From assembly GCF_000143415.4 (NCBI RefSeq), contig NW_003314299.1, positions 1,141,581-1,205,580 of the forward strand: a stretch of 64,000 nt of DNA, written 5' to 3'. Each line of letters opens with the position of its first letter. The stretch's first letter is position 1. The translations under genes were made by a program, and so were the position numbers. The notes under the pieces are model-generated. The model was not told the origin of the DNA. It did not search any database and was given only the letters and a program-made list of their open reading frames with translations. Positions 17,482-46,732 of this stretch are shown here, one piece after another. The stretch is from Selaginella moellendorffii. Lineage: Eukaryota; Plantae; Lycopodiophyta.

Positions 17482-20311
17482 TTACACGCTGCTTCCAGGT
17501 GCGGTGGTGCGGTAACTGGCGACTCTGATCTTGGCCCGCTCACCGCTCGCCGCATTTATGTACACGAAAACGAAGCTCTCGAGCGGATTCAAGGAGCTCC
17601 GCCAGTGAGGGAAGGTGAATGATCCGTCGCCCGCGTCGCTGCTGCTGCTGCTGCTAGTGCTGCTAGTGCTCCTGCTAGTGCTGCTGCCGCTACTGGATGT
17701 ACGCGTCAATCCCCAATACTGGCCCTCTTGAAGCCGATTGATTTGGAGAACGATGGCTTTTACCGTCCGCCTCCTCGATGTGTTCTTCACTGTCACCTCG
17801 TACTTGTACTGGACCTGGCCTTCCAAAGTCCACGAGCCCACCAGCCTTTGCCGGATGGACAGCACTGATTTCACGCCACCTTTTAGTGGAGAAAAGCAAA
17901 GCACGGAGTAAGTATACGATTGTTAAAAGAGAGTGGACTCTCTTTACGAAGAGAAGCTTACGTGGTATCGTCTTTAAAGCCGTTCTTACTGCTCCCACCA
18001 ACGACGTCTTTGAGGCCTTGAGCTCTGCGAAACCAAAGAGAAAACGTAAGTTCTTGAGCACTCACTCACTCTAGCCGTAAGAAAGAGAGATAGATTCCTG
18101 CCTGATTGCTGGTAGCGGTGGTCTTGTAGCAATCTGGCCAGGATGCCGATAAGCGGCCCAGTGTTATACGTCGCGGGCTCGGTCTGCTCGAAGTTGTATC
18201 TCTCGTCGGCGAAGTTATCGTACAGGTCGGGACCGCCGACGAGCGCGCCAATGAGGACGTTTGGGTCGCTCATCTTGCGCAGGTACCAGCTGCTGTAGCC
18301 GCCCCGGCAGCTGACAAAGGCATTGTCGACTTTGATGGACACGATGGACGATGCCCGGTGGTGGACCTGGCGGGGATAGTTCTGACCAAAACCGATGAGG
18401 TAGCTCGTTGCTCTTGGATTGTCTCCTAGGATGTAGTCCACCTGGGGCAGCATATAACAGACTCGCATTAAAAACTTGGTCGAGGGGTTCTTGAAGAAGG
18501 GAATTGGACTAACCTGGGACTTTGCGAGTGCTAGAAGCTCACTGGAGTCGGAGCTCAGCCTGGGGCATTGCAGTTGCTGGCGTGACGACGCGAGGTAGTC
18601 AGAGTACACAGTTAACAAGAAAGATGCAGTTACAACGTACTGCATGTTGTTCCAAGATCTCACGTACATCAATCCGCCTGAGAGAGACAAAGAAATTAAA
18701 GAGCAATGGTCAGCCAGAGGGTGTACAAACTTGGAAGAAAAAAAACATGGGTCCAAAAAAAAGAAAAAAAAAACGAAGAAAAGCTCACCAGGCGTTCTTG
18801 GCAGGTGAAAGCCGTTATTTTTCTGAAGAGCAGCACAAAGGAAGAATTGTGCCTTGGATTGAAACAGCTCCAGCGTTGGAATGTGTCGTGGAGAAGCTCG
18901 TCCTTGCATGAGAATCTGCAGCTCATGAATAAGCCATGTTCAATAGCCAGTTAAAAAAATGCTACCTTCGATGCAAGAACTTGAACTCCTGGATACTTCA
19001 CGTCCCAGGAGAACTCCATAAGCCCCCAGATTGTGCCCCCCAACGCTCCGCCGTTATCGACAGCGTAATCGAGATACTGCTCGTCTCCAGTCGCTTCGTA
19101 AAGCCACAGGGACGCCCACAGAAGTTCATCCTGGAAAAGACCAGTTACCAGAATATCTCAGTCACCAGCTGTTGCTGAGACGTAAAGACCTTACCGCGTA
19201 GCCACTCTTGGAAGTGTAAAAATTTTGCGCGAGGCGGATGCTACTGTCGTACTTCCCGCGATACTTGTCCGCGAATTCAAACAGCTGGTAAGACACCAAA
19301 ATCGAAGGAACAGGGAAGTGAGTACCGAGTATACAAAGAAAACGCGAAACAGGAACAAAACAATGAAATGCCAGCCATGGGTGATAAGCGCTCCGGACCG
19401 ACGAAAAGACAAGAATGACGAAAACAGAGCCGAAAACGAGGAGATACCAGCAAGGGGATATAGAGAGGTGACCTGTTTGGAATGTTCTACGAGCAGATCT
19501 GAGTAAGTCGGGTCAGAGCTACGCAACGCGATAGATGCCGCGGCCATTGCTGCCGCCGTTTCGCCCGCAAGGTCGGATCCAGGGTTGCTGGTGTCGATCT
19601 TGTAAGCACGGCGCGAAGTGGTCATGTCTTCTGGCCGCTGCCAGCAACCATGGTCGTTCAGGCCATCGCCCACCTACAAAATCGAGAACTTTGGGTAAGA
19701 ACACGAATCCACATTCACCAAAGAAACGTGAGTAAAGTGAAAGATTTTAAGAATGTGAGCTCTAAAAATCTTAGCTACTGGCTAGTCTTTGAAAGAAAGG
19801 GGTTCTATACCTGGCCCCACAGCTCGAATGGCGCAGTGTGAGCTTTGAGGAAGTAATCGGTGCCCCATTTGATGGCTTCTTTCGCGAATCCCATCTGGCC
19901 GGCGCCATCGATCTGCTTGCCATACTCGATGGCGCTCCAAGACAGCATTGTGATCGTGAAGGCCATTGGGAGGCCAAACTTGACATTGTCGCCGGCGTCG
20001 TAGTAGCCGCCGACTAGATCAACCTGGGCAAAGAAAGAAAGAACGAGGGGTGTGAGAAACCCGGGCAAAATATTTCGACGATCGAGCAAGAAAGAAGCGC
20101 TTACGCCCTGGGATTTGCCGTCGTCGAGCGCCGAATCCCCCCGCCAAGACGCCCGCTGGCTCGGCGGCAGCCTCCCGGATCGCTGCGCCTCGTAATACAA
20201 GAACGTCTTGCCCAGCGCATCCGAGTAATCGAACGCCAGCGCCGATTCGAGCAATGCAGCTACCAGAACCGCGCCCAGGCACGCGCAAATCGATGCATTC
20301 CTCCTCGACAT
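17482..20311 (-). CDS. Endo-1,4-beta-glucanase GH9 class C with C-terminal CBM49
   Basis: Signal peptide; [62 protein letters not shown]; C-terminal [15 protein letters not shown]...WGL...[15 protein letters not shown]. Confidence 0.92.
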
Positions 20312-21699
20312 CACTCCGCCGGCACGAAATTTCTGGAAATTTCCGCTCACACTTGCGAAATCTCTCACAGATGCGCGCGCCAGGCGCCAGAATATCACTG
20401 CACACGCCCGGATCGACAGCAAAACGATCGATAACGGGCAATGCTGGAAGAATCAGGGTAAAGAAAGATCGATCTAAAGCTATAGCATCAAGAACCCTAA
20501 AAACACGACGATCGTGGAATGGTGTATAGAAGTAGCAGCAGTGGCTAGCTAACAGCTTCAGCCGACAACAATTTCCTTTCCATCTATCTTTCTTTCTTTT
20601 TTTTACCGTGCGTGCTGGTTAGCCGTTAGACGACAATGCTGCGGTAACTTTATCTTTTCCCTCTCCAGTGACGGGTAGTTAGCCGTTGCGAGGGCGTGCG
20701 ATACGACAATGAAGAAAATGTTTTGACCGGCAGATCCATCCGGGGTTAAACTTTATTTGGCAATTGACTTTGGGTAAAATAGACAAGTCTGGAGAACTTA
20801 TGGTGACCACGACGAAAGAAGGAAACTGTTGCATTTGCTAGCCATGTGAGGGGTTCCAGGTATCGCATGTGCCGGGCGCGAATAAAATAGAATATCTCAG
20901 TGATGACTGGTGAATTTAAGTGCGAATATTATTTATTTTGTAACAGTATAATATTTTGCTTTAATTGGTTAATTTAATATTATGCAAATAATTATAAATT
21001 AAAGCTGTGAATATACAATTAACCCAAAAACGTTAGCTTATATATAAAAGTGAGTGGTCCAGTGAGTGGTCCAGATTGAAACTAATCAAATAACTATTAA
21101 AATCCTATAACACTAATAATAGTATATAACATTACTCACCATCCCCTTCTTTAAGAAGGATAGAAAGTAATTAAAATTCTTTGGTTGATGGGGATTTAAA
21201 GGAACATTAGGAGGAAGTATTGATAGTGCTATTTATTTTTTATCCCTTTGTATGAAGTGTTTTAGTTATTGTGTATATACAATTTTTGGAGGATTGTTAT
21301 GTTGAATGTTTTGTTGAACCTTATAAACTTGTGGTATAACTTGCTACAACAGTTAATAAGGTTAAATTTCTACATGGTGAGAGGAGAAGGGGTGATGGAA
21401 TGGATTTTTGGCAATTTTCCAACAAAAATTGTGATCTTGGAGATTTAAAACAACCCAAAAACACAAGTTTTTTATCATTCATCAGGCATACTTTTTTAAT
21501 AAAATATAATTACAAACTTTTTGATACAGATATTGATGTGAATATCAAAAACAAGATGCTCATGAAACATCCTTTACAGTTGCTGAATCTACACTAAAGT
21601 CAAAACCTAGAAGTATAAGCGTGCAATTTTTTAGTCAAATAATTTTACAAATGGCTTGATTATGTGTTGAGTTGTAGTCATTGCAAATGGTGTTGAGTC

Positions 21700-23340
21700 A
21701 AACTTTTGACTTCATCTTTGGTATGGATTGGTTGCAGCACAATCATGCCTAATGTGACTTTGTATTATCATAGAAAGCATTGTAATAAGAATGGAATTTC
21801 TTGTTATGGTCAACTTAACCTGACTAGAGCAAAGTCATTATTTCCTCAAAAGCTTTCAGCAAATATTCGACATTATATGATTTATATGATCCATTAAGAT
21901 TTCACATCAAATCAGATTTATAATAAGTATATACAGATTGTGGAAAGGAATAAGTCATCTGGTGAACCTCTTTGTCGAAATGATTTTCTAACTATGTAGA
22001 ATATTAACAATTTGCATAGAAAGTATTTGCTTTCAACTTATCAACTACATAAAAATGATGTACAAAGTGTATATATTTAGAAAAACACAAATCCTGAGAA
22101 AATATTTTCTTATCACAAAGGTGATCGAGGTAAAGATTATTTTAGCATTGAGATTCAAACAACTTAGCAACTGCAAAAGATGGTAGACTTTGCAAATAAT
22201 AATTTGTTCAGTTTTGATGCAACTTTTAAAATTAATCGCTACAAAGTAAAATTTTATTTATTTTTAAGTGAATAACATTTAATAATTTATAGTTCCCATT
22301 ATATACCATGCTTATTTTTCATTATCATGGAAATGATCTTCCAATTGCATGGGTTTTAACTTTTAGTGAGAAAGGAGAACATATGAAGGATTGGATGATA
22401 GTTTTTAAAAAACAAGTTTTAAAACACATTTCAGATTGAAAACCATATGTGATAGTGATTAATGATGCTAAAGTAGAGATTAATGCTATAAAGTAATTAG
22501 TTTGATATGATATAATATAATTTTTTTTCTTTTATATAGAGCTATATTTTTTATTATCAAATTCTATTATGTATTTGGCATGTAAGGAGGAATTGGCTCA
22601 AACTTATTATTCATAATGTGAAATCTTGGGATATTATGATGGAAATATGGAAACTTCTCAAAGATATTATATATTATTTATTTCATGCAACTTTTCATGA
22701 TGATAATATTATACGAGCTGAGATTAAACAACTTATCGAACATTTTGAGATGGATTTTCAAAATTAAATAGCCTTTATCAAGTATTTTCAAAATGAATAG
22801 AAGGACAAAGTTAGTAAGTGAATTAATATTTTTATTTTTATAAATTATTTTAATTTATATTTGATAAATATGTGGGTTGTTGCTACTTGAAATTTCCCTC
22901 ATACTAACAAAGCAACAAATAGTTTGATTGAGGCATTCCATGCAAATATGAAAACTATACTCTCATTCGAAAAAATATATATTTTCAATCGAAAGATGGA
23001 TTAGGTAATTCATCAACTTATCACTAAGATTTATGTGAGGTATTGGTTTACTAGTTATTGCAAAGATCATGGTCTTATTCGAAACTATGCATACGAAAAA
23101 CTAATTGATGGTGTGATTATTAAAACAAGAAATATTAACAACTCTCAAGTAAAATTCGATACAGACAATACTCACAAATCTTGTGTATAATCCTCTTTAG
23201 ATTCAACTATATGGTATTTTATTGTTGGAGATGAAGGACATAGTGATTGGGCTTTTTTGATTTGGTGTAATTGTCCATAGGCAAGCAAAAGAAACTTTTG
23301 TAAGTCTCTAGCAAAAGTTATTATGTTAAAACAAGGAGAC
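21700..23340 (+). pseudogene. Decayed intron-containing MULE-type transposase with SWIM finger (At1g60560/At4g13970-like family)
   Basis: YYHRKHCNKNGISCYG; QLQKMVDFANNNLFSFDATFKINRYK/FPLYTMLIFHYHGNDLPIAW; ILLCIWHVRRNWLK; TNSLIEAFHANMK; RKMD*VIHQL; CNCP*...FCK. Several in-frame stops. Confidence 0.75.
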
Positions 23341-26300
23341 AAAATTGACCGCACTACAACTAATTATGAGATTTAATCATCACAATTGTATGCAATTTTA
23401 GAACTTAGGTCAGATGACTTATTTTATCATCATCAAGATTTTGAAACACAACTATGACATAGGTAATTCACTTATTAATTAAAATTTTGAAATACTTTTA
23501 AAATTTGAGCAAAAACTTATCCATCAAAATGTTTATTATGAGCAAGAAATTCAATTGGAGACTATATTAGAGGTAAACTACTACATTTTATATACTAATA
23601 TATATGAATATTGTNNNNNNNNNNNNNNNNNNNNNNNNNNNNNNNNNNNNNNNNNNNNNNNNNNNNNNNNNNNNNNNNNNNNNNNNNNNNNNNNNNNNNN
23701 NNNNNNNNNNNNNNCCTCAAAGTTATAAAAACAACATTGTAACAAAAGATGATAGATATTTTACAAAATCTTCCTGATGAAGAAACTTTTTTATCTATGA
23801 TTAACAATGATTTAGAAATGATACAAGAGACGATTGCAACCTTTAAAGCTAAACTTCATGTCTCCAAAAGAGTATATCATCCATCAAAATAAAATTAGCT
23901 ACTCTCTAGATAAGTTGCCGGCATTCATGTTGTATGACATGAGAACAAGTGTCTTGTTGGAGTAGAACAATAATGTCCAATCTAAATAAGGAAGTCAAAT
24001 ACTTGGAGTTAAAGAACCCCATAAGCATGTTGTCCCCGTAAGACTAACTAGTTGAGCAAATAGAAGAGAGGATTGACCATCATATGAACAATTGTTAGAG
24101 GATGTTTATCCACTAAGCCTCCTAGAAGTTTCTGAAATGCAAATACAATTGTAGCATAGTACTCTATTTGAGATTTTGAAGTTTTTTTTGCTCCAAATTA
24201 CACCTAGTGAAATAAATCACAGAAAATGGTGGTTTTCTTTTCTTTCTGATCACCAAGAAAACACCATAACTAATGAATAGAAGGTATGGCAGTGTGAGAC
24301 AGTTGCTCAACATTTGGCTTGTATACTTCAATACCTCTATTGCTCACAAGATGGCCTAGCAACTTCCCTTTTTGGATAAAGAATTGGCACTTACATGTAG
24401 ATTTAGAGTGTAGAGTTAAATCATGGAACATGAACATCATAAGCCTTTGGAACGTGGTGGGAGCATTAATGAGGCAAAAAGGGAGGATGCAATATGCAAA
24501 AATTCCCCAAGGAGTACAGAAATATATCTTTAACTAATCCTCTATAGTGATTTGAATATAGTTGTAAGTAGAAAACCCATCTATAAAGCTATATATATGT
24601 TTGTTAGCAACCACATCTAGAATAATATCAATAAATGGAGTAGAAAAGTAATTATAGATAGTAGCTTTGTTCAGTGCCCTAAAATCAACACAAACACATA
24701 AGTTTCTATTAGCTTTACATTCCAGAACTATAGAAGAAATCCAATCAATGACCTCCACAGGATATGTAAAATTTGACTGTAGGAGTTGTTGGATTTGCTA
24801 CTTGATGAGAGGTTCTAGGACTATATTCAATCGACTACCAAACTACTGTACTAGTATAGCTTTTGGCTTAAGAAAAATATGATGCATTTTGACTATTGAA
24901 TTGACTCTCTTTCAGTCCTTATAACTCCAAGTGAAAACATTTGACCACTCACAAAATAACACCATAGCACCTACTGTTCACTATTTGTAAGAGTGTTGCC
25001 AATAAAGATTGGCTGAGGCTCTAAGGTATTATCAGCCATATCCAATTGAAGTAACTTTAGATGATCTGTTATGCCATCTGCTTGTACTTGAAGAATATCC
25101 ACAAGAGAGATATTATCTAAGGGAGTAAGTTGTTCCTCTTCCAAAACCAAGTCTTGAACTAACATCTAGAGGCCTTGCTTTGTTAGTGCATCTGCCATTG
25201 CATTAGACTCCTTAGGTATAGTGACAATATCCCAGCAATCCAACTCAATGAGGAGTGATATCAGACTCCCATGCAAACGTTGTAAGCAGTGATTGAGGAC
25301 TTTATATGTGCCTAGTACTTATCAAACCAACAGCTGAGAATCTGATCTAGGGCTCAACCAATGAACTGGATATTGTAAGACTCTTTGAACCACCAATAAC
25401 ATTGCCTAATACTTCACATTGTTGGAGGAAGATGTAGAAACTACCATTGATATGGAGAAGAGTATGTCTCCAATAGGTGATACAAGAAAATCACCAATAC
25501 CACCACAGTTCAATAATCAGGAAAACACCCCATTAGAAAATAATCTATATACTAGTGGCTCATTTGTATTTGAAACACTGGAAACAGTTGTATTAGTGTA
25601 ACTTGCAACCATAGTTGAGATCAGAGTGTCATTGGAGGCAACACAGGTATGAGAAACATCCATGACACTCGAAGTTGGTACGCTGGCTCCATATTGCACC
25701 TTCTCATCCTTGAAGTATTGTATCTTTCATCTCTTGAGTCTCATCAATTAACAAAACTGACACCATTGCTGAGTTGAAAATATCATTGTCAATTGGAACT
25801 AGTTCTGATGCCTAAAATCATATATAAGGTGGTGGTTATATTTCCTACTAAACTGCACATCAAACCCTTATCCCAAAACATGTGAGCTGAAACTCTATCC
25901 AACAATTCTTGTCCCAAGAGCAGTGAAAATGACTAAACCAAATCTGCCTAGCCATCTTGTGGAAATTCAACTACCAAAAATATTGAGTTGAACCTGCACC
26001 ATGTCCACAACAATTGTCACAGCCTTAATCAATCCAGCGGGTTTCACCTAATGTTAAGCACACATCTTAAGAATAATTGAGGTTTGGGTGTTGGAATCAA
26101 TTTGCAACTACCAACAAATGGGTGCTGGCATGATACTTGTTCCTGAGTAAGAGTCTATGATTGCTTTAGGCATGCATTTGCCATTGACTAGAGGATTGTA
26201 ATAGAAAGCCCTTGGATCAACCGAATGTGAGTGATCCACCACATGGATTCCCACTTAGTGTAGATTACACATCAAATTCTTAGTTACCTATGGAGCTACT

Positions 26301-28457
26301 CTAGAGAAAGAAAGATTGTCCAAAAGGCATGGAGCAACATGAAGAAGTTATGCCATGGTAATTGTTAACCTTAGTAGCTATAAATCCTCAAGCAAGGAGT
26401 ATGGTGGGGAAGTGGTTACAAGGAGTGCAACCTGAACCATGACCCGACGAGTTGGCAAGCATTCCTAAAAACGTTCTCAAGCAGCTGCCCATTGAGATTT
26501 TGTAGCCATGAGAACGTCAATGGATTCTTCCTTTAGTTCTCAAAATAAATCCACTAGTGAGATTTGCTCATCTTCCAACATATGACCCTTGATGAATTTC
26601 ACTAGAAGTAGAGCATTATCTTACTGTTTGCATCATCCCATTGGAGGCCCTTTTAAATAGGGTGCCATGGTTGGATCCAAAGCATTTGGCTACTCAAAAT
26701 CTTTCTCTTCATGTTGATATTTACCCAAGCCCATGCCAGGTAACCATCCTTGTTTTTGCAACAATTGATACCCCTTGTTATCCTTAGAGATTCTTGCTCT
26801 TCACATTGGATTAAGCTTTACCAAATAGACAAAGTTCTCCACTTATACATGGTTGACTGTTAAAGATGGTGAACTTCTAGTAGCCATAGCTGTTTGTGGC
26901 ATTATTTTTGTGTGATCTAGTAGTGGCCTTGGGGCATACACTTGAGTTGGTGGGGGAGGAGAAAGCACCAAGTGCATTGGAGGTGCTGGAAGTAAATGTT
27001 GTTGCTACAATTGGAATGCTTGTTGCTTGATGAAGCATTAGTCTTGGTATGATCTGGCTTACTGTAGTAGAAATCAAGAATTGATAAAAAGTTGGTGCAA
27101 CTGGCACTTGCAAAGCCAATTGAGTTGATGAAGGCCACTAAGCTAGAGCGGACCACTGAGGGGAAGCATACCTTGGAGAGACTGCATTGTGATTGTGTGG
27201 ATGATAAAAACTTAATGCATAATACAGCACTTGATACAAATAGATCACAGTGGATGATAAAAACTCCCTATTTGGTAAATTGGAGCAAATGTAGACAGTG
27301 TCATCCCTTCGGTGTAGCTAGGCATCATTGCTAGAGTTTCCAAGGGTGTAGCAGTGATAGTAATTATAGGAACAAAATCCCATCTTGCTTGTGTAGCCCC
27401 CAGCTTTGCAAAGAACTTCTCCTAACTATTAGTGATCATCTTTAAGACTATGGTCATCATTTTGTAATATCCAACATGCAGGATTCCAAAGAGACAAACA
27501 TGTCTCATTGGATATTAAAAGTGGATGCGGAGGAAGTGGATCCCATCTAGATGAGATACTTGCATTCTTGTGTCTTTGCTTCTAGTATTGCTGCTTCAAT
27601 TATCATTGGTTCCTTGCAGTGCACTTTCCTAGCCAAGTCAAGATGTAGAGCATCAATATATGCCTGGACAACACTCAAGCTTTAGCATTGACTCCTTTGT
27701 TATTACACTTTTGGATATAAGTTTGGAAGCACTAATTGAATTTGATGAAGGAGGTCCAATTTTGCCATGATACTATCCTTGTTTTCTAGGTATCAAATTG
27801 CATCAAGAAAAACTTTATGAGGGTGTCAAATTCTGCTACTTGTTGTTGCAACACATTCAACTACCATGATAATTCTTGCCCCAAGAGAGACAATCAGAAA
27901 TAAGTTGTTTGTGCCTCTTTTGGGATTGCTATTGCCACAAGGAATGATTTGATGCTCTCCATATACAACCAAGGATCGTTTTTTGACATCTCCTTTGAAT
28001 TTTGGCAAGATTGTGACTATGTGAGTGTCAAGAACATTCCACAATCTCCTAGCTATAGCATAGATCTTCTTCTTTGTTAGCACTAACTTGCAAATTTCTC
28101 AAAATGTATTCTTGGATATCTAAATCTTAGATTTTGTTCCTATTGCCAGCACAAGAAATCATGCCCTCCCCATCAATGTCCTAGAGTAGTTTGTGAAAAT
28201 CTTGACTGTAAGCACCCAGATCCATCCATCCCAAGATCATTTATCCATAGTAGAACTTTCTATTTTCTACCAGATATGACTGATCCATCCGAAAGGATCC
28301 CGAATTTCTTTCATACCTTCCTTCATGAGCTTTATATCCTAAATGTAGAAAAGACCACTGAAGCAACAGCCTCAAGATCCAGAGGCCACTCACTTCCTTA
28401 TCTGGCATGCCATAGATGGAAAGCTATCTCATTTCCTTGCTTAAAAACAGGTATAAA

Positions 28458-28460
<3 letters not shown>

Positions 28461-28491
<31 letters not shown>
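28461..28491. repeat. (CT)n microsatellite
   Basis: Seen directly. Confidence 0.95.
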
Positions 28492-28495
<4 letters not shown>

Positions 28496-31400
28496 AAATA
28501 ATCATTAGGGGTAATTGGGGCAAATGCATGCACAAGTTTTATAAAATCTTGATAAATAGTTGACTTTAACATTCCTAGCTTAATCCACATATTTAGCTCT
28601 GCACGAAGCAAAAGGATCTGGAAGCGATCACCAAAATTGTATAACTAACTCAAACAAAAATGATGCAATTGTTAAAATGTATTATCATAATCATTAGTAT
28701 GTCTAAATGTGTGTTTGAAGATATTTGGGAGAAAAATCCAATTTGCATAATTAGTTGCACTTAAACCATTGTACCACTGTAACATCGTTCTTGAAGACAT
28801 ATGAAAAACTTATATAAACATTGGATATCACCCCAAGAATGATAAGTGGCAATCTTTAAAAACTAATTGAACCAATAATACATATCATTCCTAGGATTTG
28901 AATGGAAAAAATTTAGTTGGACATAAGGATTGAGAGCAAAAGTGGGAGGAACTATCAATTAAGTTTGATTATTCAATTGTAAACACATAGCAATAAGTAA
29001 TTGCACCAATTGTTGGTCTAGTGTCAAAACAAGAGAATACAAAGGATGAGTATACTACGTTGCCATAAAAAGAAATGAAAAGAAAAGAAAAAAGTAAAAG
29101 TGAATAAATAGAAACATTACAAGATCAAAAGAAATCTAAACAATGCAAAAGTTACATCTAAACAAAAAGAACATAAATCCAAGCACTCCTTAAAGGCAAT
29201 TTAAGTTACTTCACACTAATACAATTGTATAAAATATAGAAAAATCCATATTCAATTAACCCAAAAACCTTAATCTATATATAGAAGTGAATGATCCAGA
29301 TTGAAACTAATTCAATGGCTATCAAAATTATATTACACTAATAAAAGTATATAACATCATAGGCATATAATACATATAAGATTATCTAAATAAAAAATAA
29401 AAGACATATTTTTATTATAAATAATCAAAGATTTAGTTTTAAAAAACTAACTTATATTAATAACAAAATTAATGAGAATAAAACTATATAAAGGATTTAT
29501 AAACCTATATATTAATACTTATAAATACTGAATGTTAAGTTTATTTATAATGTCACCTTCTTATAAAATTTATAATTTTAATGGATTAAAACCAATCCAT
29601 ATTAAAATGTCATAAACTTTACATATTGAAGAAGTTTAAGTGATAATAAAAGTATTGATCTTTCATATTTACTTTTTTTCCCTTGAAATTAGGGTATTTC
29701 AAATATATTCATATTTACTTAGGTATTATCATATATTTATCATAAAAAATTACAATTTAGGCTTGATGACTGCTATATAAATATTTTCATATCCACTTTA
29801 GTAATATAGTCAAGGTTTGGTTACCAAATTTTTAGTTATTTCCCTTTATTTCTTCTGATTAGAAATGTTTATCTTAAATTACAAAATCATAAATTATTAC
29901 ATATGGATAATTATTTTCATAGCTTTTACATTTAATATGTCAATTTCTGATGATCCTTGTGTTGGGTGGCTTAAAAGTTGTAAAATTACATCATTTCAAT
30001 TAATGAATTAAAGATTTTTATAAATTGCAAGAAAATCAATGGTGATTGGCATAGATCTTCTTTTATAATTGGCACTTGTAATTTAGAAATTCTAGATTGC
30101 ACTTTTTATCCAACAACAAATAATTTAATTTGTAATAATCTTCATGGTGAAGAATTTAATCTGAATACTCTTGCAGGCAATGATGATGGGCATCTTGTTT
30201 GTTGCTCACTTCCAATATTTTAATCCATAATTCTCATTTATTTATCAAGTAAAATATCTAGAAAGTAGAATTAATAAATATTTTTATTCTAATCCTTCTT
30301 TTATATCATTCTTAACATTACATTTTACTAAATTGCATTAAATTGAAACTTTATTTAAAAAATTTATATTTTTTTCATAACTTCATACCATAGTTTATTA
30401 ATTGTATATACTATACATCATTTAATATAATATAGTTAGATTATCTTGTATTTAGCTTCAGAACACTTCATCTAACAGAAATATTTATTCTAATAGACCA
30501 TGAATCTTAACAACTATAAGTTTTAATCATGAAAAACTTTAAGTTACTACAAATTTCACTATTTGTTTTAGTATTTTTATTTTATAGTAATTTTCACATA
30601 TTGATATCTAAATCAAATTTAAACTACAGAGAAAAGTTGTAATAGTAAAACTTTTTTTTGTTAAAATTAATGAGATCCTATCTTCTAATAAACAGCATTA
30701 GAAAGATGTTATTTTCTATAAATTTATTAATATAAATAAAATAAATGCACTATCATGCATTATATCGTTATTTACATAATAAAACAGGGCCATAATAAAT
30801 AGATTCAGATAATGTTGTAATAGATATATTGTATGTTTTTATTCAAATAAAAAAATGTATTCTATTTTAATTTTATTTCTTAATTTCAAAATATATTTGT
30901 ATTTGAATTCAGAATAGCACTAGGCTAGGTGATTTTTAATTAAGTATTTGTTACTGAATATATCACCATTAAAAAGTCTATAATAAATCTTGTTTCTTAT
31001 TAAATACATCACCACATTTAAAATTGCCATGTGGAGCTATATCTTGTTACAGGATCATATAATCTTAACATCTGGAGTTTTAACATCATGGTATAATTAA
31101 CTAATAGTTATTAAATATATCACCACATGTTAGTATTGATATCTAAAGGTCTAGCTAAATTAACTATAAGTGACATTTGGAGGTTTAAGATCTAGATAAA
31201 ATAAAGAGCTCAATGTTAAAGATGACAAAAATAAAAGACAAAATGTTAATATTTTATTGTATAAAGTCATATATATACATTATATTATTACATTTTTTTG
31301 GGGGGTCATGGGCATCTAGCTAGAGGCATGAGACAGGGAAAACCTTTCTCCTACTGCCTCCATAGTCTTTACTTGAGTTTCTACTCTTGACCCTCCTTCA

Positions 31401-33469
31401 AGTAAAAGTCCCAAGTGGCATGCTGGGAGGAGGATAACTAGGTCAAGCTTTTGCCAAGAATTGAGCATGCAGATCACAATTTCCATGTCGTGGTATATGT
31501 CTTCCACCTCATCACACAGTTAGAGGTGGCACAGGAGCTGCAGGTGAATTCAATGGCCAGTCTTTACCTAGAGGCTATAATTCCTGCATCTATATGTGCC
31601 TAGAGTGTGCCACACCCAGAGTGGGGTTCATACCCATGGGATTCACTGTTCCATGTTATAGTTTACCACTTCCTATCTAAGCCATCTCCCAAAAGTACTT
31701 GTCAAGAGGGTGTTGGAGGGCAGACTCCAAGTCAAGGCCTAGATGCATGGTCCACTTCTTAAGGTCGAACCACTAGCCACTATCTCTCTTGTACATAAGA
31801 CTTATGATTGAGTGCTTGCATAGATAGTTTCATTTGAAGCTGGCTTAGTCTTCTTTGCAACATGATGTATTTGACTACTTGCTTCAATGCCAAGGGGATG
31901 GGTAGTTTTTGAGTTGAGCTCACAAGCTAAACTAAAGTCAATGAAAGCAAAAAAAAGTCAAAGGAAGTCAATACAATCCCCTAACTAGTAAAAGTTTAAT
32001 GGAACTACTTTAGTTTGTCCAGAACCAAGAATTTTTAACTTGAAATTTAATTGCTTCAACACTAATTAATCTTCTAGTCTAAAAAGAAAGAAAATTATCT
32101 ATTAAACAACATAATTAATATTAAAATCAGAACATATTCAATCTTCTTCTATGTCTAAAAAAGTAGAAATGGGTATAGTGGAATGCTCTTTCACTATAGG
32201 CTCATGTTGCATGTAATGTTATGCTATGCATTTAGCATAAACAGGTAAGTGAATGTGAGATACAAATCCCTAAGCCCCAAAGTGGAGCCAAAATGGTGTC
32301 ATGTGGTAGTGGCCGAAGCGAAAGCCAAATGAGCATAACACGTTTGGATTAAAAGTTTAGACTTGAAAAGTCAAGAGGAGTGGAACTCTCAACAAAGTAC
32401 TCAAGGAACGAGCACGAAATAAGCAATAAGTGAGTCTCTAGAAAAGGGACACAAAAGGACCAAAACATGACACATGGAAGTGTCAAGATGGACCTAAGAT
32501 GGAGTCCGAAATAAAATCGAGATTGAAACCGAAACTGAGACTGAGTTCAAGTCTAGGATTGAATCCAAGTCTAAATCTAAATTCAAGTCTGAGTCCGAGT
32601 CTGAATACTAATACAGGTTGTTGGGTGAAAGCCCAAAGCTATCTATTCGGGGGGGGGGGGGTGCTGTAGGGGGTTCCAAAAGTATAGTAGGAAGAGTGTG
32701 GGGGTTGAACTTCAATGGAGCCAGTTTGGCTAGGAAAGTCTAGTGTGACCCAGAAAGGTTATGCTAGCCATGTGTTGGGTGATGATATATCCACTTAGGA
32801 GTCTAAGGCTAAAATAAATACGGATTGACAAGTGGGATAGCTTGGTGAAGTATTCAAGAGCTGACTTTAGTTCCTCTGGGAGATTAAATAGTCAATGCTC
32901 CCAGTCCAAGTGTGGGTGGCACTACCTACTTGAATATCTAGCGTGGCTCAACGAAACCTCGCTCTAGCTCTATGGCTAGAGCACCCAAATGCAAAAAGTG
33001 GGAAGAGTATCCATAAGGCTTGTGTTTCAAAATCTTGTCCCAAAGTCTCGGATTATGGACAGAAAGATAAGCAGTTCTTTAATATAGTGACCAAGGATAC
33101 AATCACATGGGAAGAGTGTGAACTATACTTGAGCTCACAAGTTGAAAAGTTGAGCTCATGAGTTGAGTTGAAATTTCTATTGTAGTTTAATACAAATATT
33201 AAAAACTTTAAAATATTTAAGAGATTGAGAGATTGAGCATGGAGCGCACAAGTGGGAGAGATCAATTGCAGGAGAGTGTAGGAGATGGAGTGTGTTAGTG
33301 TGAACATGAGTTGAGATTGAGAATGAGAGAGTGAGATAGTGCAAGAAATCTAGAACGATCGAGAGATCGAGAACGAAAGATGCCACCAAGGGTGAGTTTC
33401 GATTTGATTGCTTCCACTTCCATTTTTTTTCTTCTTGCTTCTTTCTTGATTGCTTCTTCAGGGCTCGCC

Positions 33470-33877
33470 ACCTCAAGCACTTTGGCCGCCCAAGGGGCCA
33501 AGGTTATTTGAATAACCTTGGCCCTTTGGGTAGCCAAAGTGCCCGAGGTCAAGCTTGGGCTGGCCACCTCAAGCACTTTGGCTGCTCAAATAACCTTGGC
33601 CCCTCGGGTAGCTAAAGTGCCCGAGGTCGAGCTCGAGCGAGTCATCTTGAGCACTTTGCTCGCCCGAGGGGCTGAGGTTATTTGAATAACCTCAACCCCT
33701 TGGGCAACCAAAGTGCCTAAGGTCGAGCTCGAGCTAGCCACCTCATGCACTTTGGCTACTTGAGGGGCTGAGGTTATTAACCTCGGCCCCTCAGGCAGCC
33801 AAAGTGCTCAAGGTCGAGCTTAAGCAGACCACCTCGGGCACTTTGGCCCCTCGGGTAGCCAAAGTGTTTGAGGTGGG
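33470..33877. repeat. Tandem array of about 5 internally palindromic units (~80-95 bp)
   Basis: Unit: acctc..gcactttggc..cc.aggggc..aggttatt-tg-aataacct..gcccct.gg..gccaaagtgc..gaggt, joined by (t)cgagctcgag-like linkers. Confidence 0.9.
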
Positions 33878-34096
33878 GTTTGATTTTTTTTTTTTTCTTT
33901 GACTGTTTGAATTTTTTATTATCTTTATTTAGTTTGACTACAAAAAAAAAAATTCTTTCAGAAAAGGAAATGTACCACATAAAAAGGTTGTTAGAGCCAA
34001 GAAGACATAAGAAGTTTAATTTGGCACTGACGATGACATTACAATCGATATGTTCATTGGCACATCAACAAAGACACATTTACTTAGAAATCCATC

Positions 34097-34280
34097 GCCT
34101 CCACCACCATCACCTCCGCCATTACCACTTCCACCACCTCTATCGCACCTCCACCAGCACCATCACCACCTCCACCACCACCATCGCCACTACCACCACC
34201 ACTGCCACTATTGCCTCTGCCCCGGCTGCCACCACCACCATTGCCACCTCTACCACTACTCCTCATTAGCCCACCACCAA
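34097..34280. repeat. Imperfect (CCA)n low-complexity tract
   Basis: ccaccaccatcacctccgcc... seen directly; it explains the Pro/His/Thr-rich ORFs. Confidence 0.85.
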
Positions 34281-34839
34281 CACAAATCCCTAAAGTTGGG
34301 CAATTTAGTGGTGTTCATGATATGGAACCTAAGGAACAACTTGGAGCTAAAAGAGTTGCAAACCTTCCTGACAATATAGTGGACAAGTGCTTCTAATAGA
34401 TTGTTATGCGGACAAGGGAAAAAGTAGTTCACCAAACACTTGAGGTGCTCAATTGGCCAAACCCTTGTGACTTGATCAAAGAAATCCCCTTTTGCCGTTT
34501 GCACCAAACAAACTTTGTCTGCATAGCATCCAAGTATGTCAACCCAGACATATATAGCTTGTTCAAACAGAATGGCCTTGCGATGAATATCGGTATGTTT
34601 CTAGTCTCTTTTTGTAAGCCAGGAAGAATGAAGATCATTACTATCACACTTGAGATTGTGAATAGCTGGGATCCTATTTGGAGGAGAAAGTCCAATTAAG
34701 GATCTTGTTTAGCATCAGTCACCAAAGGAGATTAAAATTTTATGCACAAATATCAATAAGATGTTAGAGAAGGGTGTTTTTTGCAAGTTTTAAAATCTTT
34801 GGGCATGTGATCTTGTGATAATCTTCATAGGAATATTCA

Positions 34840-35050
34840 ATTTTGTATTGACTATTATCTATTAAATGATGTGATTATCTTATATATGTACCTTATTCCA
34901 CACACTACTAATCTTTTGGATCATGTAGGGAGAAGTCATTAATTCATCAAGTTAGATCTTGCTTTTAAATACTAATAAATGCCAATAGCAAAAGAGGATA
35001 TTCCTAAAATTGCTTTTTGTACACAATTTAGTATTTGTACGAGTTTTAGT
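34840..35050 (+). mobile_element. Ty3/gypsy reverse transcriptase relic (second, unrelated element)
   Basis: CIDYYLLNDVII..YLIPHTTNLLDHVG..FIKLDLAFKY**MPIAKEDIPKIAFCT resembles CIDYRxLN..YPLPRIDDLLD..FSKLDL..YHQI.I..EDIPKTAF. Confidence 0.65.
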
Positions 35051-35835
35051 AACTTCATTAATGATGACATAATCCACTCAGAGGGAACATGTTTAATCAA
35101 TTATGAGAAGTTGGTTTAAAGCTAAAGTGGTTAAAATGTGATAAAGAGTGAAGACTAACTTTGCTATATAATGCAACTATAAACAACAACGTGTAACAAT
35201 AAGTTAAGTAATAGAAAATAAACTTAAACATATATCAACTATAATAGAGGACCTCTTTTCCTAAAAATAAGCTTAGAAAATAAACACTGGATGAACTTAT
35301 GCTAAATGAACCCTTTGACGGTACTTTAAAAGAAGGATAAAAGAGTCACTAATTTATTCATGTAAGGACTCTTTATTATTTATGAAGAACTATCTGTCAA
35401 GACCTTCTATTGTAATAGCACTAACAGAATATTATTAATGTCAAGGCCTTCACATAGAAAATAAAGCATACAAATTTAAGAGATGTCAACAACACTAATA
35501 TATATGGCAAATCTCATCACATACCCAACAATAAATATCATGGCCATAACCATGTCCTTGCCTTTGTTCTTAGGCAACATCAGTGTCCATCTCTATCAAA
35601 ACAAGAGCATCTCCCATGGGAAATGGAGTTAAAGCACATCCAACTATAAGTGGGAAAGGTGATTTTTTTAGTATTGTGCCAATAAAAGAGTATTGTCAAG
35701 AGTGGTTAGGGCAAATGCATTCATAAGTCCTTTAAGACCTTGATGAATGTTAATCACAATATGCTCAAACTTAATAATATATTTGGCTTTGCATAAAGTA
35801 AAAGGTTTCAAAAGCAAACATCAAATTGCATACTT

Positions 35836-36495
35836 GACATAGACAACCCTTAATAAAGATGATGCAATTGCTAAAATGCATCATTAGAGTTGTTAGCATA
35901 CCTAAATACATACTTGAAGACTTTTAAAAGAAAACTTCAATTCACATAAGTGGCTATATTTAAACCATTTTACCACTGTAGTGTTGCAGTGTTGTTCTTT
36001 AAGACATGTGGGAAACTCATGTAAATACTGGGCATCATCCCAAGAATAATAAATGGTAATTATTGTAAAGTGATAGAACTAATAATATACATTCCTAAGG
36101 AAGAAATTTGGCCAGACACGAGGATTGATAGTAAAAGTAAGAGAAGCTAAATCATGTGTCATAAGCACCACTATCAATTAAATTTAAGTATTCAATTGCA
36201 ACCATATAGTATCAAGTAATTGCACCTATTGTTACTCCAGAGTCAGAGGAAGAGGAGAGGTTGCAAAGGAGGAGTATATTACTTCGCTACTAGATTAAAT
36301 CGAAAGCACAAATCTAAACACTCCTTAAGGATAATCAAAGTTGCCCCCTCACTTCTATCAATGTAAGTATATGAAATATAAAAATATGTATATTTAATTA
36401 GCCCAAAAACCTTAACTTATATATAGGAGTGAGTGTTCTAAATTGAAATCAACCCAATAGCTATTAAAATTTTATTACACTAATAAATACACATA
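35836..36495 (-). mobile_element. Third, diverged LTR copy (probable solo LTR) of the Tat-like family
   Basis: Colinear similarity to 28660-29356: tgatgcaattg.taaaatg, ccaagaat.ataa.tgg, gtaattgcacc, cccaaaaaccttaa..tatatata, tattacactaataa. Confidence 0.65.
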
Positions 36496-37029
36496 ATTTA
36501 CCTTATTAATAGTTCTCTCAATAAAATCAAAAAAAGAAAGAATACTATTGTGAGTATAATCTACATATTCCAATTTAGCTATAATACTAAAGAGAATAAG
36601 AAAGAAAATATAAGAAGGAAGACAAAGATAAAAAATACAATGAGGAAAAACTTAAACCAATCATAGGTTATATACTTATAAATTATAGCCATTGCTAATT
36701 ATAAAATTATAGTCATCTAACATAGATTTAAGGGCCAGCCACGTAAGTGCTGGCTTTTCGAATTCCATGCTTGCCTATTACAACAAGAATAATGAATTTG
36801 GACAAGCTATAAAACCGTTTAATTTGGTGCCCAGCAGAGATCTGCAACCTGGAACTCTGTGCTTATGTAAGTGGAGATCACCACTAAAAGTGGCATCGGC
36901 CCAAGAAGCTCAACCTGGTGAAGAAGTAGAAAGCTTTACTTCCTGGAGTCCTGGCGTCTCAACACCGGCAATTCCTTCTTCGAGACCATGGCGTTGTTGA
37001 TCAAAACAAGCTTGAAGTCGGCCATAAGA

Positions 37030-40000
37030 CTAAGATGGTTGAGGAGATTTTACCTTTGAGCACTCAACGGCCTCAAGCGCAAGCTTCCACTGCTTGTCCA
37101 CAAGCTTCCACCGCGCCACGTCCTTGATGTCACAGCGTCCCACAACTTGCTCAAAGAACAGACCCTTAGGAAGCTCGTAAGGTAGCTTTTCCATTAGACT
37201 GCGGATGGTTGCATCCCTGTTCTGCATCTCTTCTTGCAACCTGGTTACCTTTGCCTCAAAGGCACCTCGTGCGGCGTTGTTGTTGTTTACCGCCATCTTC
37301 TCTGCAAGAGCTTCCACTTTCCTGTCAAAAACACAGTGTCATAATCAAGTTGTGGAGTTCACGCGAGTGTATCACCTGCGATCGTCTTCCTGTTGCGTGA
37401 CGAGCTTGTCCAGCTCACGACGGACAATTGATAAGCCTTCAAACACGAGGCAGACAGACAGTTTCCCATCGATAACACTTATGCCACAGGCGGGAGGAAC
37501 TTCAAAGATTCTTTTCACAACCTGCAAATCACAGTGAGAACACCGACCGGAAAACAGGAGCTTACTTGCCTTCACAGAAGAAAGCTTCGCCAGCGTTGAA
37601 ACTTCCAAAACTTTGGAGTTGAAGAGCCCCGCCCGATCCTCGTCTTCAGTAACAAGGTAACACTCTGGCCTGGCATCCGCATAGCGCGTCAAGAATACAA
37701 TGGGCTACAAAGGACGATGAATGCAAACCTTTGCCTTGGCTTCAGCTCTGCAGCTGCATGAAGACTCCGTGCTGTCTTTACGACGGAGCTTATAAGCTCC
37801 ATCTCCTTCTCAACTTCGTGATTGCTCCACCCCTGAAAGACAAAGGAAAAGAACAACGTTAGGTAGTGTCAAAAGAATCATGGTTTTTACCGGCTTCTCT
37901 GTGGGATAGCTTGCGGTCATAATCGAAGACCGCTCTTCACTCTTGTTCTTGTGAGGTAGCCTCTGCCACAGCTCTTCGGTAATGAACGGCATAAACGGGT
38001 GCAGCATGCGTAATCCCGAATCCAGACAAATATATAGAGTAGACCTCGTAGCAGCTTTACCATCCTCCCCCAGCTCCTCGGAAGATAGAAGCGGCTTCAC
38101 TAGCTCGATAAAGACGTCGCACAGAGAGTATTGCCACCACGAATAAACTGCGCTTGAGGCTCCAGATAAATCATATCTAGCAAAACTCTTGTTGATCTTG
38201 CAGACTATGTCGTTCAAGGAGGACAAAATCCATTTGCAGGACCAGGGAAGCGAGGATATGTCGAGATCTTCCTCTGGCTCAAAGCCGTCATGAAAGTTGA
38301 GTCTCGCAAAACGGACAGCATTCCACAACTTGTTGCACCACTGGCGGTAGCCAAGAAACCGCTGGATGTTCAAGTTCATGTTCTCGGCCTGCAAAAAAGG
38401 ATGGCGTCAAACAACAAGATGCAAGAAAACCATACCTGTGCTGTATAGGCGATAAGTCCAAACCGCAGAGCGTCGACTCCACACTCGGGGATCCCTCGAG
38501 GAAAATCTTTGTGGAGCCCCTCAGTGGCTTGTTTGAGCTCTGACGGTTGCAGGTTGAGCAGAGCTAACTTGGCCACTAAACCATCCAAAGATATCCCGGA
38601 TATCACGTCAAGAGGATCAATCACGTTTCCCAGGGACTTGGACATCTTGCGCTTGTGAGCATCCCTCACCATCCCGTGCAGCAAAACCTGCATACCAACG
38701 TTTCCCATTTGTCCAACAAAAACTGCTAAAACATACCGTTTTGAAAGGAAGCTGGCCGGTCAGCTGTGTCCCCAGCATCACCATCCGCGCCACCCAGAAA
38801 AACAATATATCATGTCCCGTCTCCAAAACTGTTGTGGGATAAAAGGCAGCGTAGTCGGCTGTAGAATCAGGCCATCCAAGCGAGGAGAATGGGAAAAGTC
38901 CCGATGAAAACCACGTATCAAGAACATCGGGGTCATGCTGCAACTTGAACGTAGCACCCGGAAATCTTTGCTTGATCTCTGCATCTGCAGCCTGTTCGGA
39001 GTCTGCAACCGCCCAGTGATCATCGTAGATTCCAAACGTCTGATCTTCGTCCGCGTCCAATACGGCATACCAGGCGGGTATCCTGTGTCCCCACCAAAGC
39101 TGGCGAGATACACACCAGTCTTCAATATTTTCCAGCCACCTTCACAACGAAACATGACAAATAAGAACGCGCAAAAAGAGAAGGAACTTGCCTGAACCAG
39201 ATGTCTGCAAAAGACGACGGAACAATCTGAAGCTCGTTGTTTCTCAAGGCCTCACAGGCTCGCACAGCCATTTCCTTGCAATCCACGTACCACTGAGGCT
39301 TCATCATCGGCTCCAGCACATCGTTTGATCTTGAACAAATGGCAAGAGGCATCTTGTGAGGAAACTTCCCTCGGAAAAGTTTCTGGAATTACCAATTCTT
39401 AGAGTTCATTAAAGTTACCAAAACCAAGCTTTCTTTTACCTTGCGTTCTAAAGCTTCCAAAACTCGTTCCCGAGCAATGTAGCGCTTGAGGCCCTCAAAT
39501 TCATGGCCGCCATTCTCGTTGATCCTTCCATCGTCCGTGAGGATGTTGATAAACTCAAGACCGTGCCTCTTTCCTCTTTCGAAATCCTTTTCATCGTGTG
39601 CCGGAGTAATCTGCAGAAAGAGAATGGCATCACGTAGTATAAGAAAGCACAAACCACATACCTTTACAGCTCCAGTACCTTCATTTATCTTCACTTTCGA
39701 GTCCTGTATGACGGGAATCCTTCTCCCGTTGAACGGATGAGCGAGGAACTTCCCGTGAAGATGTGCAAATCTCGGATCGTCTGGGTGAACAGCAACAGCG
39801 GTGTCTCCAAACATGGTTTCCGGTCGCGTGGTAGCAACCACAATCTCTTCAGAGCTGCCCTCCACCGGATACGCAAAATGAAACATCCAACCAAATGGGA
39901 CTTTCTTGTCATAGCCGGGTACCGACAGCGAGGTAGCCTCAACGTCTCCTGTGTGCTCAACTTCAATGTCCGAGATGGCAGTCTTGAGAAAGCAGTCCCA

Positions 40001-40833
40001 CTTTACTATCCGGTTGGCCCTGGGACAAGAAAAACGTTAGTCTATCACTGAAGTTGATGTACACATACCTGTAAATCAGTCCCGCTTTGTATAACCGCAC
40101 AAAAGCTTCAGTTACAGCGCGTGACCTCTGCAGATCCATTGTGAAGCACTGTCCAGAAGAGCAATTACTTGCGAGATGGTAAACAAGGGAGGGGAAAAAA
40201 AGCTTGTAAACCTCTCGAGACCAATCTAGCGATGCTCCCATTGTCCGGAGTTGAGAACAAATGGCTCCTCCATACTCTGTCTTCCACTCCCAAACTTTCT
40301 TGACAAACGCATCTCTCCCGAGATCATGCCGGGTAAGGTTCTGCGTGGATGCGAGCTTCTTCTCGACCACCACCTGCGTAGCAATCCCTGCATGATCGAC
40401 TCCAGGCAACCACAAAGTCACGCGGCCGCTCATTCGGGAATGCCGGACAAGAGCATCCTAAATCACACACCAACACAAGAGTTACAAAAAATCGATGTTA
40501 CACCAAAACCGGCTATACCTGCACAGACACGGTAAGAGCATGGCCGAGGTGCAAATGCCCCGTCACGTTTGGTGGTGGCAACACCTTCGCAACGAAGAAG
40601 GATGAGAGTTCACTACGAAGAAAAAACGTTTAAATTTCTTCTACCATAACGAATTTTGGCTCAGTGCTGGCCGCATCCGCTCCAAAGAATCCACAGGCCT
40701 CCCACCAAGAATACCAGCTAAAGAAGAAGCGGATGAGATTGCTAAATGACCGAGACACATACCCAGCCTGAACGTCCGCAGGATTGTAGCCCGGCTCCAT
40801 TGTTGGATCCAGGGGCTTTTTTTCCGCCGCCAT
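37030..40833 (-). CDS. Valyl-tRNA synthetase (cytosolic type) with C-terminal F-box-like extension
   Basis: [120 protein letters not shown] found no frameshift when splicing by eye. Confidence 0.92.
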
Positions 40834-43900: not shown

Positions 43901-44364
43901 TTTTTTTTTTTCCAAGGAGGGGATTAAAAGGATGTAAAAGACGAATGAAGTGAGTTCAACCTTTTATATATAATGTTAGACGAAGATGACAATCGTGAGT
44001 TTAAGTTAACATAGGTTTCAAATGTTGACCAAAGGGAAGATGCAAAAGCAAATTCTACTTATAGTCATGAGTTCGAGTTAATGGTGGTTTTGGAGGATTG
44101 TTGACAAATAGACTTAGAAATGGGATATATTATTTGCTACAATGGTTCTTTATGAAATATAGTGGCTCTTAAAGTTTTATTTTGGTTCAAAANNNNNNNN
44201 NNNNNNNNNNNNNNNNNNNNNNNNNNNNNNNNNNNNNNNNNNNNNNNNNNNNNNNNNNNNNNNNNNNNNNNNNNNNNNNNNNNNNNNNNNNNCATAGATA
44301 ACTAAAACGAATAAAGAAGAGGATTAATGTGAGGCTGGAAAGGTATTTAAAACGTAGTTTATGT

Positions 44365-45011: not shown

Positions 45012-45808
45012 ATGGAGGAGGAGGCGTCGCGGCACAGCGTGGCGCTGGTGCTGGATTTTGGCTCCCAGTACACGCATCTCATCACACGCCGCATCCGGCA
45101 GCTCGGCGTCTGCTCCTTCTGCCTCTCCGCCGCCGAGGCATCGCTCGACGCCATCGCCAAGCTCGCGCCGTCGCTCATCCTCCTCTCCGGCGGCCCCCAT
45201 TCCGTCTACGAGCCCGGCGCCCCCAGCGTCCCTCCCGGATTCTTCGATTACGTCCGCGATCGCGGCGTCCCAGTGGTGGGCATTTGCTATGGGCTGCAGC
45301 TCATCGTTGCGCAGATGGGCGGCAGTGTCGAGCCGGCCGCCAATCGCGAGTATGGGAGCATGGATGTTGTGCCAGTGGCGGGATCGGTGTTGTATGGCGA
45401 CGACGATTCTACGCAGTCTGTGTGGATGAGCCATGGGGACGAAGTTGTGGAAATGCCGCGCGGATTTGTCGTTGTGGCGAGGAGTGTTCAAGGCAGCATT
45501 GCGGCGATCGAGAATCCAGACTTGGGAATCTATGCATTGCAATATCATCCAGAGGTACTCGTGATTCTTTCCTTGTGCAATGCCTTGCGTGATCTTCTTC
45601 GATCTTCACTGATTGTTTTTTGTTCTTTAGAAAAGTTTTGGTCTAGTGCAATGCTTTGTGTGTTCTACTTTGATGTGGTTGATTTTCTTTGAAAGGGTGT
45701 GTTGTTTGAATTCATTTGAAAGTTTGCATTTCATTTGTTCTCTCTTTCTTGCTCTTGGTTTTTTACAATAACTTTCAAGGATTTTCTTGCTGTGATTGAT
45801 CTTCTTCT

Positions 45809-45851
<43 letters not shown>

Positions 45852-46732
45852 CCCCCNNNNNNNNNNNNNNNNNNNNNNNNNNNNNNNNNNNNNNNNNNNN
45901 NNNNNNNNNNNNNNNNNNNNNNNNNNNNNNNNNNNNNNNNNNNNNNNNNNNNNNNNAAGAAGCCCAAGTACCTGGTGCAAGGGACGCTCTATCCCGACGT
46001 GATCGAGTCGTGTCCTCCTCCTGGAGTCGTGGGACACTCTCACACTATCAAAAGCCACCACAACGTTGGGGGACTTCCACCATCGATGAAACTTTTGCTC
46101 TTGGAACCTTTGAAGTGGCTTTTCAAGGACGAGGTAAGTGTAGTACGTCGAATCAGATCTTTCTTCCATGCGTTGCTTCTTTTCTTCTCCAGGTAAGAAA
46201 GCTAGGAAAACTTCTTGGCATTCCCGAAGGATTTCTGAAAAGGCATCCATTTCCTGGTCCCGGTTTGGCTGTTCGTGTGATCGGTGGCGACGTTACTGAG
46301 GAAAACCTTGAAACTTTGAGATTGGTAAGCACACACCCTGTGCTTTTTGTGTTCTATCACTTCCACTGGTTCTTGTTTGTAGGTGGACGAGGTTTTCACA
46401 GCTTCGATCAAAGAGGCTGGTCTCTACGACGAGATGTGGCAAGCTTTCGCTGGCATTCTCCCCGTCAAGACTGTGGGAGTCCAAGGAGACAAAAGGACTC
46501 ACTCCGGCAGCGTTGTTCTTCGTGCAGTCACCAGCGAAGATGGCATGACTGCCGAGAGGTTTTCTCTTTTAACTTTTCCTTTTTCTTTGCTTACACTGTT
46601 TGTGCTAGGTATTCATTCAAAAGGGAGTTTCTCGACCAGGTGACGAGAGAAATCTGTAATACGGTGGTGGACGTGAACAGGGTCTTTTATGACTTGACTT
46701 CAAAGCCCCCCGCAACGATAGAGTGGGAGTGA
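45012..46732 (+). CDS. GMP synthase (glutamine-hydrolysing); middle part falls in an assembly gap
   Basis: [41 protein letters not shown]; after the gap [50 protein letters not shown]. Confidence 0.92.

Follow-up and report, generated by a model that had tools for sequence, protein, structure and literature searches.

A valyl-tRNA synthetase gene of Selaginella moellendorffii carries a transcribed C-terminal tail of probable F-box ancestry

The gain of new roles through appended domains is a textbook theme for the aminoacyl-tRNA synthetases of eukaryotes, which are old enzymes; the modules that they bear include GST-like, WHEP, EMAPII and UNE domains. These modules resemble the C-terminal tail of the valyl-tRNA synthetase (ValRS) described here in being non-catalytic and in sitting at the terminus of a conserved synthetase, but their conservation extends over large clades and their functions are demonstrated, whereas the tail, a putative F-box, is known from a single lineage. 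A literature search found no published report of a fusion between an aminoacyl-tRNA synthetase and an F-box, in agreement with an earlier note on this DNA, made from the sequence alone, whose author knew of none. The nearest published link between the two is the KLMT-1/KSS-1 toxin-antidote system of C. tropicalis, in which a synthetase-derived protein is tied to an F-box protein and to SCF-mediated degradation (bioRxiv 10.1101/2024.09.16.613340; PMC12680543). That system consists of two separate proteins, a PheRS-beta paralogue and an F-box/LRR antidote, rather than a fusion, and it belongs to a nematode and not to a plant. A similar architecture is seen with the PRANC domains, F-box-like domains at the end of ankyrin proteins from poxviruses and Orientia; in these proteins the target-binding part is N-terminal and the short SKP1 handle occupies the extreme C-terminus (PMC9414399, PMC4353913). 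The Selaginella protein has no sequence or family relation to these proteins (no Pfam PRANC match); its N-terminal part is a housekeeping enzyme, and its F-box-like tail is at most a putative SKP1 handle.

The gene lies on the minus strand of a 64,000-nt stretch of S. moellendorffii DNA (contig NW_003314299.1, positions 1,141,581 to 1,205,580), which is referred to as the window and to which all coordinates below apply (Table 1). It is a member of the eukaryote-type (cytosolic-type) ValRS family in which class Ia catalytic, editing and anticodon domains are present. The gene model was searched exon by exon, with each exon ORF taken separately, and the Pfam tRNA-synt_1, editing-domain and Anticodon_1 models match successive exon ORFs. 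PF00133 matches four of these ORFs, the editing-domain model matches an exon ORF with an E-value of 1.8e-9, and PF08264 matches the anticodon-domain exon with an E-value of 6.4e-31. The best PDB matches of the exon ORFs are the ValRS structures 4xkz (2.6e-21) and 1gax, and homologues of the anticodon exon carry the name valyl-tRNA synthetase. All of the HIGH-type (HLGH), editing and KMSKS motifs, which the earlier note had described as intact, were located in the gene. The start codon (MAAEKK) is presumably that at 40833-40831.

Table 1. Features of the ValRS gene and its C-terminal tail, in coordinates of the window
Feature	Position	Strand	Basis
Valyl-tRNA synthetase coding region, eukaryote-type, with introns	37030..40833	-	Pfam, PDB matches, motifs
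HLGH (HIGH-type motif)	40540-40551	-	located in sequence
TTRPET, editing motif	39815-39832	-	located in sequence
GTGAVK/ITPAHD, editing motif	39593-39610	-	located in sequence
KMSKS	38634-38648	-	located in sequence
Last intron, 54 nt, GT-AG	37322..37375	-	RNA joint, splice sites in sequence
Terminal exon: end of coiled-coil arm, F-box-like tail, stop, 3'UTR	36723..37321	-	RNA contigs, raw reads
Last-exon ORF	37030-37317	-	stop at 37032-37030
ValRS-derived part of last exon (KVEALAEKM...ATIRSL), coiled-coil loop and second helix	37195..37321	-	alignment, AlphaFold
F-box-like segment, 47 codons, in-frame ATG (MEKLPYELP...) to AAG before GTAAAA	37054..37194	-	phmmer, hhalign, ESM Atlas
F-box-like core, LPKGLFF...KQWKLAL	37075-37173	-	sequence
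Seven codons VKSPQPS and TAG stop, opening with donor-like GTAAAA	37030..37053	-	sequence; unspliced in RNA
3'UTR, ~210-307 nt	36723..37029	-	RNA contig ends

The eukaryote-type (cytosolic, TWN2-like) ValRS of plants are the closest described relatives of this protein. They share with it the class Ia core, the anticodon-binding domain and the HIGH, KMSKS and CP1 editing motifs, and their C-terminal coiled-coil arm, with its KM..G(Y/F).(E/D)KV loop, has an alignable counterpart in the Selaginella protein. The Selaginella enzyme is somewhat more diverged, with 48-52% identity to angiosperm ValRS in the anticodon domain as against 53-61% for three relatives (P0007, P0008 and P0013), and the model with the presumed start lacks a long Lys-rich N-terminal extension, though upstream exons are possible. 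The gene is expressed and apparently functional, and its product most likely still works as a ValRS. RNA-seq depth over 36500-37900 is low for a housekeeping synthetase, with 10 reads among about 9 million in one run (X11) and contig word depths of 7-16. Possibly the gene is a second paralogue that is used less.

The Pfam model of the C-terminal coiled-coil arm (PF10458) matches none of the ValRS exons. The segment AEKMA...GAFEAKV...QEE of the last exon aligns with the coiled coils of other ValRS, and AlphaFold renders the ValRS-derived part of the exon as a long helix (pLDDT 72-93). The earlier note had called the arm shortened, which is borne out under one alignment, where the second helix falls about 14 residues short, and not under another, where it is full length.

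Transcription of the 3' end of the gene was followed in RNA reads from four runs, belonging to four studies, that were placed on 36500-37900. Two contigs (X1 and X5) skip 37322-37375, 37522-37569 and 37669-37727 and, because they are spliced, represent RNA. Contig X1 is unbroken on the genome from 37320 to its end at 36723 and X5 from 37320 to its end at 36817; X7 behaves alike in two pieces and also ends at 36817. Because X1 and X5 run unbroken past the last intron, one spliced contig joins the anticodon-domain exon, across three removed introns, to the tail and the 3'UTR. Contigs from three studies show no sequence differences from the genome in this region. Stranded raw reads from X11 cover 36782-37486; all 10 are oriented as expected for minus-strand RNA, and three of them, together with contigs of three studies, contain the joint 37320/37375 (cut +1). 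The F-box-like tail is present in the mature ValRS mRNA. The claim that the synthetase frame runs without a stop into an F-box-like motif thus stands, the motif lying exactly where it had been placed (37075-37185). The last intron is spliced out as expected, with bounds one nucleotide inside the predicted 37321-37376 at either end, and RNA that spans this intron and the stop codon retains the tail and ends ~210-307 nt past the stop. The concern of the earlier note that transcripts might splice out the tail or end before it is not borne out, as the RNA runs through it.

Introns at the 3' end of the gene measure 48-59 nt, a size in keeping with S. moellendorffii. The second-to-last intron (37522-37569, minus strand, 48 nt) appears to be of the GC-AG type: its RNA joint (37520/37569) can be shifted by up to three places, and GC...AG are the sole splice-like ends within that range.

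A mistaken gene model, in which transcripts would end or splice before the tail and the F-box-like ORF would belong to a separate or overlapping gene, is a very improbable source of the fusion. An in-frame ATG lies just ahead of the motif and a donor-like site just behind it, as such a gene would have. Single RNA contigs in three studies nevertheless join ValRS exons, tail and 3'UTR, and the raw reads agree with them. No RNA joint occurs at the donor-like AAG|GTAAAA (GT at 37053-37052) in contigs or raw reads, and the reads placed on the region show no pile-up of ends ahead of the tail. An overlapping F-box gene that splices at this site was rejected on the RNA and on the absence of downstream exons, and a chimeric assembly at the ValRS-tail junction was ruled out by the RNA contigs that cross it.

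The C-termini of other ValRS indicate how much of the last exon is additional. Cuscuta P0126 and several further C-terminal fragments of eukaryote-type ValRS all end 32-36 residues past the G-Y-x-x-K-V-P loop, and so do the last exons on two genomic contigs of relatives (L003 and L004) that have 55% identity to the ValRS gene in the anticodon domain. Aligned with the Selaginella protein, they stop at about its MEKLPYE, so the approximately 50 residues beyond, which none of the other ValRS compared has, are an addition that starts where a normal ValRS ends. A word-index search with the anticodon exon returned best relatives at 59-61% identity, the closest contigs (L001 and L002) ending before the C-terminus. 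Among proteins of 53-168 aa, none shared words with the last exon in a word-index search, and phmmer found no representative of the coil-plus-tail combination among 1.84 billion. The earlier note had asked for the same fusion in related species; the tail is absent from every ValRS C-terminus compared, those of the two relatives with 55% identity included, and so looks specific to this lineage.

Whether the tail is an F-box was approached with several types of search, which differ in outcome. The F-box-clan models of Pfam (PF00646 and PF12937), the check that the earlier note had proposed, match neither the last exon nor the tail alone, even at E<=10. A phmmer search of PDB sequences with the last exon returned no F-box; a match to acyl-CoA-binding protein (E 1.1) was taken as chance. 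AlphaFold models of the tail are of low confidence, with pLDDT of 43-64 from the single sequence and a mean of 59.6 from a six-sequence alignment, and contain two helices instead of three; Foldseek found no match in the PDB for these low-confidence models.

When the 96-residue last exon was compared by phmmer with 1.84 billion representatives, six matches fell below 1e-3: two coiled-coil proteins, two CBM14 repeat proteins and two angiosperm F-box proteins. The top matches, the long CBM14 chitin-binding repeat proteins P0001 and P0002 (E 7e-11), were rejected as chance; in these, the short stretch Y-E-x-P-K-x-x-F-F-(D/E) ... G-R-C is matched nine times, and multiple copies inflate whole-protein E-values in this search. 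The only matches which are neither repeat nor coiled-coil proteins are the two plant F-box proteins, P0003 and P0004 (Nepenthes GMH22234.1 and Penstemon KAK4487279.1), whose F-boxes are verified by Pfam. The tail aligns in register with a Pfam-verified F-box (KLQSELPKQLIFTEILTRLSVKPLVRCKLVSKEWK) at 42% identity and 40.8 bits. The E-values of P0003 and P0004 are likewise inflated by the two to four F-box copies in each protein; estimated from bit score and library size, a single copy corresponds to an E-value of about 0.5 database-wide and to about 1e-3 under an F-box hypothesis stated beforehand.

Against a five-sequence F-box profile, hhalign assigned the tail a probability of 95.7% and a score of 41.7, and 300 shuffled tails scored 9.3 +/- 2.1 with a maximum of 16.9, so that none came near the real score. 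A word-index search with the F-box of P0003 returned one protein, P0127, a Pfam-verified F-box which was therefore found through P0003 and not through resemblance to the tail. In hhalign, the alignment of the tail to P0127 alone is in register (P 8.7e-4); the corresponding BLASTP comparison is not significant. Among the named clusters of the ESM Atlas, all of the nearest neighbours are F-box clusters (top score 0.93); they come from plants, nematodes, rotifers and fungi.

Based on these alignments, the tail keeps the Leu-Pro start, the spaced hydrophobic core and the Trp of the F-box in a form alignable to bona fide F-boxes. With plant F-box/FBA proteins such as Nepenthes GMH22234.1 it has the pattern LPK.L.F..(I/V)(L/V).R...K.....KLV.K.WK in common, in register. 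It differs from them in falling below Pfam detection, in lying at the very end of its protein, where no substrate-binding domain follows, and in having Cys where F-boxes usually have Leu after the conserved Arg. No resemblance to a substrate-binding domain (LRR, WD40, kelch or FBA) occurs in the 3'UTR or downstream of the tail. The fit to the F-box consensus asserted in the earlier note consequently holds as regards in-register alignment to P0003, P0004 and P0127 and the hhalign result, and fails as regards Pfam. Since Pfam finds no match and the architecture of an SCF substrate receptor is absent, the protein is not classed as an F-box protein. The F-box identity of the tail is moderately supported, and F-box ancestry is quite likely.

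Alternatively, the F-box resemblance could be due to chance, the tail being a lineage-specific extension that arose, for example, by loss of the stop codon and reading into what had been 3'UTR. Its amphipathic, helical sequence would then merely imitate the F-box pattern, which carries little information. The negative Pfam, PDB sequence and fold tests agree with such an origin, as do the borderline database-wide value of the best single-copy match, the chance repeat matches from the same search and the BLASTP result with P0127. An open frame of 55 codons at the local base composition would moreover arise about 6% of the time by chance alone; the open frame by itself is therefore weak evidence, and the case for a fusion rests on the in-frame F-box resemblance together with the RNA data. 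What makes coincidence rather improbable is that F-boxes, aligned exactly in register, make up two of the six significant matches from the search of 1.84 billion proteins, that the separately found P0127 also aligns in register in hhalign, that none of the 300 shuffled tails scored close to the real one, and that the language-model neighbours are uniformly F-boxes.

The anatomy of the tail suggests how F-box sequence could have come to follow a synthetase. An in-frame ATG (MEK) lies three codons ahead of LPYELP, as in an ordinary N-terminal F-box, and the segment ends in AAG|GTAAAA, a good 5' splice-site consensus, beyond which the frame closes eight codons on. Only 14 residues separate the last position of the F-box core from the stop, and the stretch 37030..37053 may be former intron sequence. 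A second donor-like sequence, AAG|GTAACC, occurs in the coiled-coil coding part of the same exon (37243-37251, minus strand, GT at 37248-37247) and is used by no RNA record, so that the one which closes the tail may likewise be a chance occurrence. The span from ATG to donor, the stop in the would-be intron and the lack of a gene downstream fit the capture of exon 1 from an F-box gene that has since been lost. In this proposal, a deletion or rearrangement would have brought that exon, from an adjacent gene, into frame behind the end of the coiled-coil exon of the ValRS, the captured segment extending from the ATG three codons before LPYELP to the AAG|GTAAAA. About 54 residues, with a diverged F-box as their 47-codon core, would thereby have taken the place of the canonical C-terminus of the ValRS or lengthened it, translation would continue for seven codons into the former intron before it stops, and the remainder of the F-box gene would have been lost. 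Such an exon-capture origin is the most likely one, and of the two explanations offered in the earlier note, a young accidental fusion with an F-box relic is the better fit to this anatomy.

The approximately 10 kb downstream of the ValRS are AT-rich and hold no credible ORF on either strand, and the ValRS 3'UTR shows no coding signal. With tblastn, the tail found no paralogous copy of itself in the 64,000-nt window, and F-box proteins searched against 35000-37400 matched in their F-box only, the rest of those proteins remaining unmatched. A long AT-rich stretch (20000-36700, 25-42% GC, no ORF above ~130 aa) adjoins the 3' end of the ValRS; transposons or repeats may make up this stretch and have taken the place of the remaining part of the putative F-box gene. 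Upstream of the ValRS, on the opposite strand, an exon ORF at 45012-45689 contains a class-I glutamine amidotransferase domain (Pfam GATase, 1.1e-31) and looks, by eye, like the N-terminus of GMP synthase. Assembly gaps (runs of N) occupy 23615-23714, 44193-44292, 45857-45956 and 60337-60638, 602 bases together, and two of them flank the intergenic region between the ValRS and GATase ORFs.

It is also possible, though unlikely, that the tail is a working C-terminal F-box that docks the ValRS onto SKP1, in an SCF-type ligase or in a non-SCF SKP1 complex, and that couples valine/tRNA status or the turnover of the ValRS to ubiquitylation. The hydrophobic core positions, the Leu-Pro and the Trp are all kept, the frame is open and transcribed, and other proteins, those with PRANC domains, do bind SKP1 through an F-box-like domain at the C-terminus (PMC9414399, PMC4353913). 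Against docking are the lack of a Pfam match and of a confident three-helix fold, the absence of the tail from every other ValRS compared, and an anatomy that fits a captured exon ending in former intron sequence. Binding of SKP1 by the putative F-box is accordingly judged unlikely, and a shade less probable again is that a SKP1-bound ValRS would recognise substrates for an SCF ligase or that SCF would control the stability of the ValRS itself. We infer that any SCF role of the tail is small or absent. The reading preferred here, with a probability of roughly 0.6, is a working ValRS with a tolerated, lineage-specific, F-box-derived appendage that came from a captured exon.

Surveys of domain architecture that are based on Pfam would miss a ValRS-F-box-like combination of this type. 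If the tail does not bind SKP1, the gene would be a transcript-verified case of the birth of an appendage, in which the last exon of an essential gene was joined, in frame, to a scrap of its neighbour and the product was tolerated. If the tail does bind SKP1, tRNA charging would be linked directly to ubiquitin-dependent proteolysis in a plant, and if it were a working F-box, this ValRS would be the first of the aminoacyl-tRNA synthetases to have a direct connection to the ubiquitin system.
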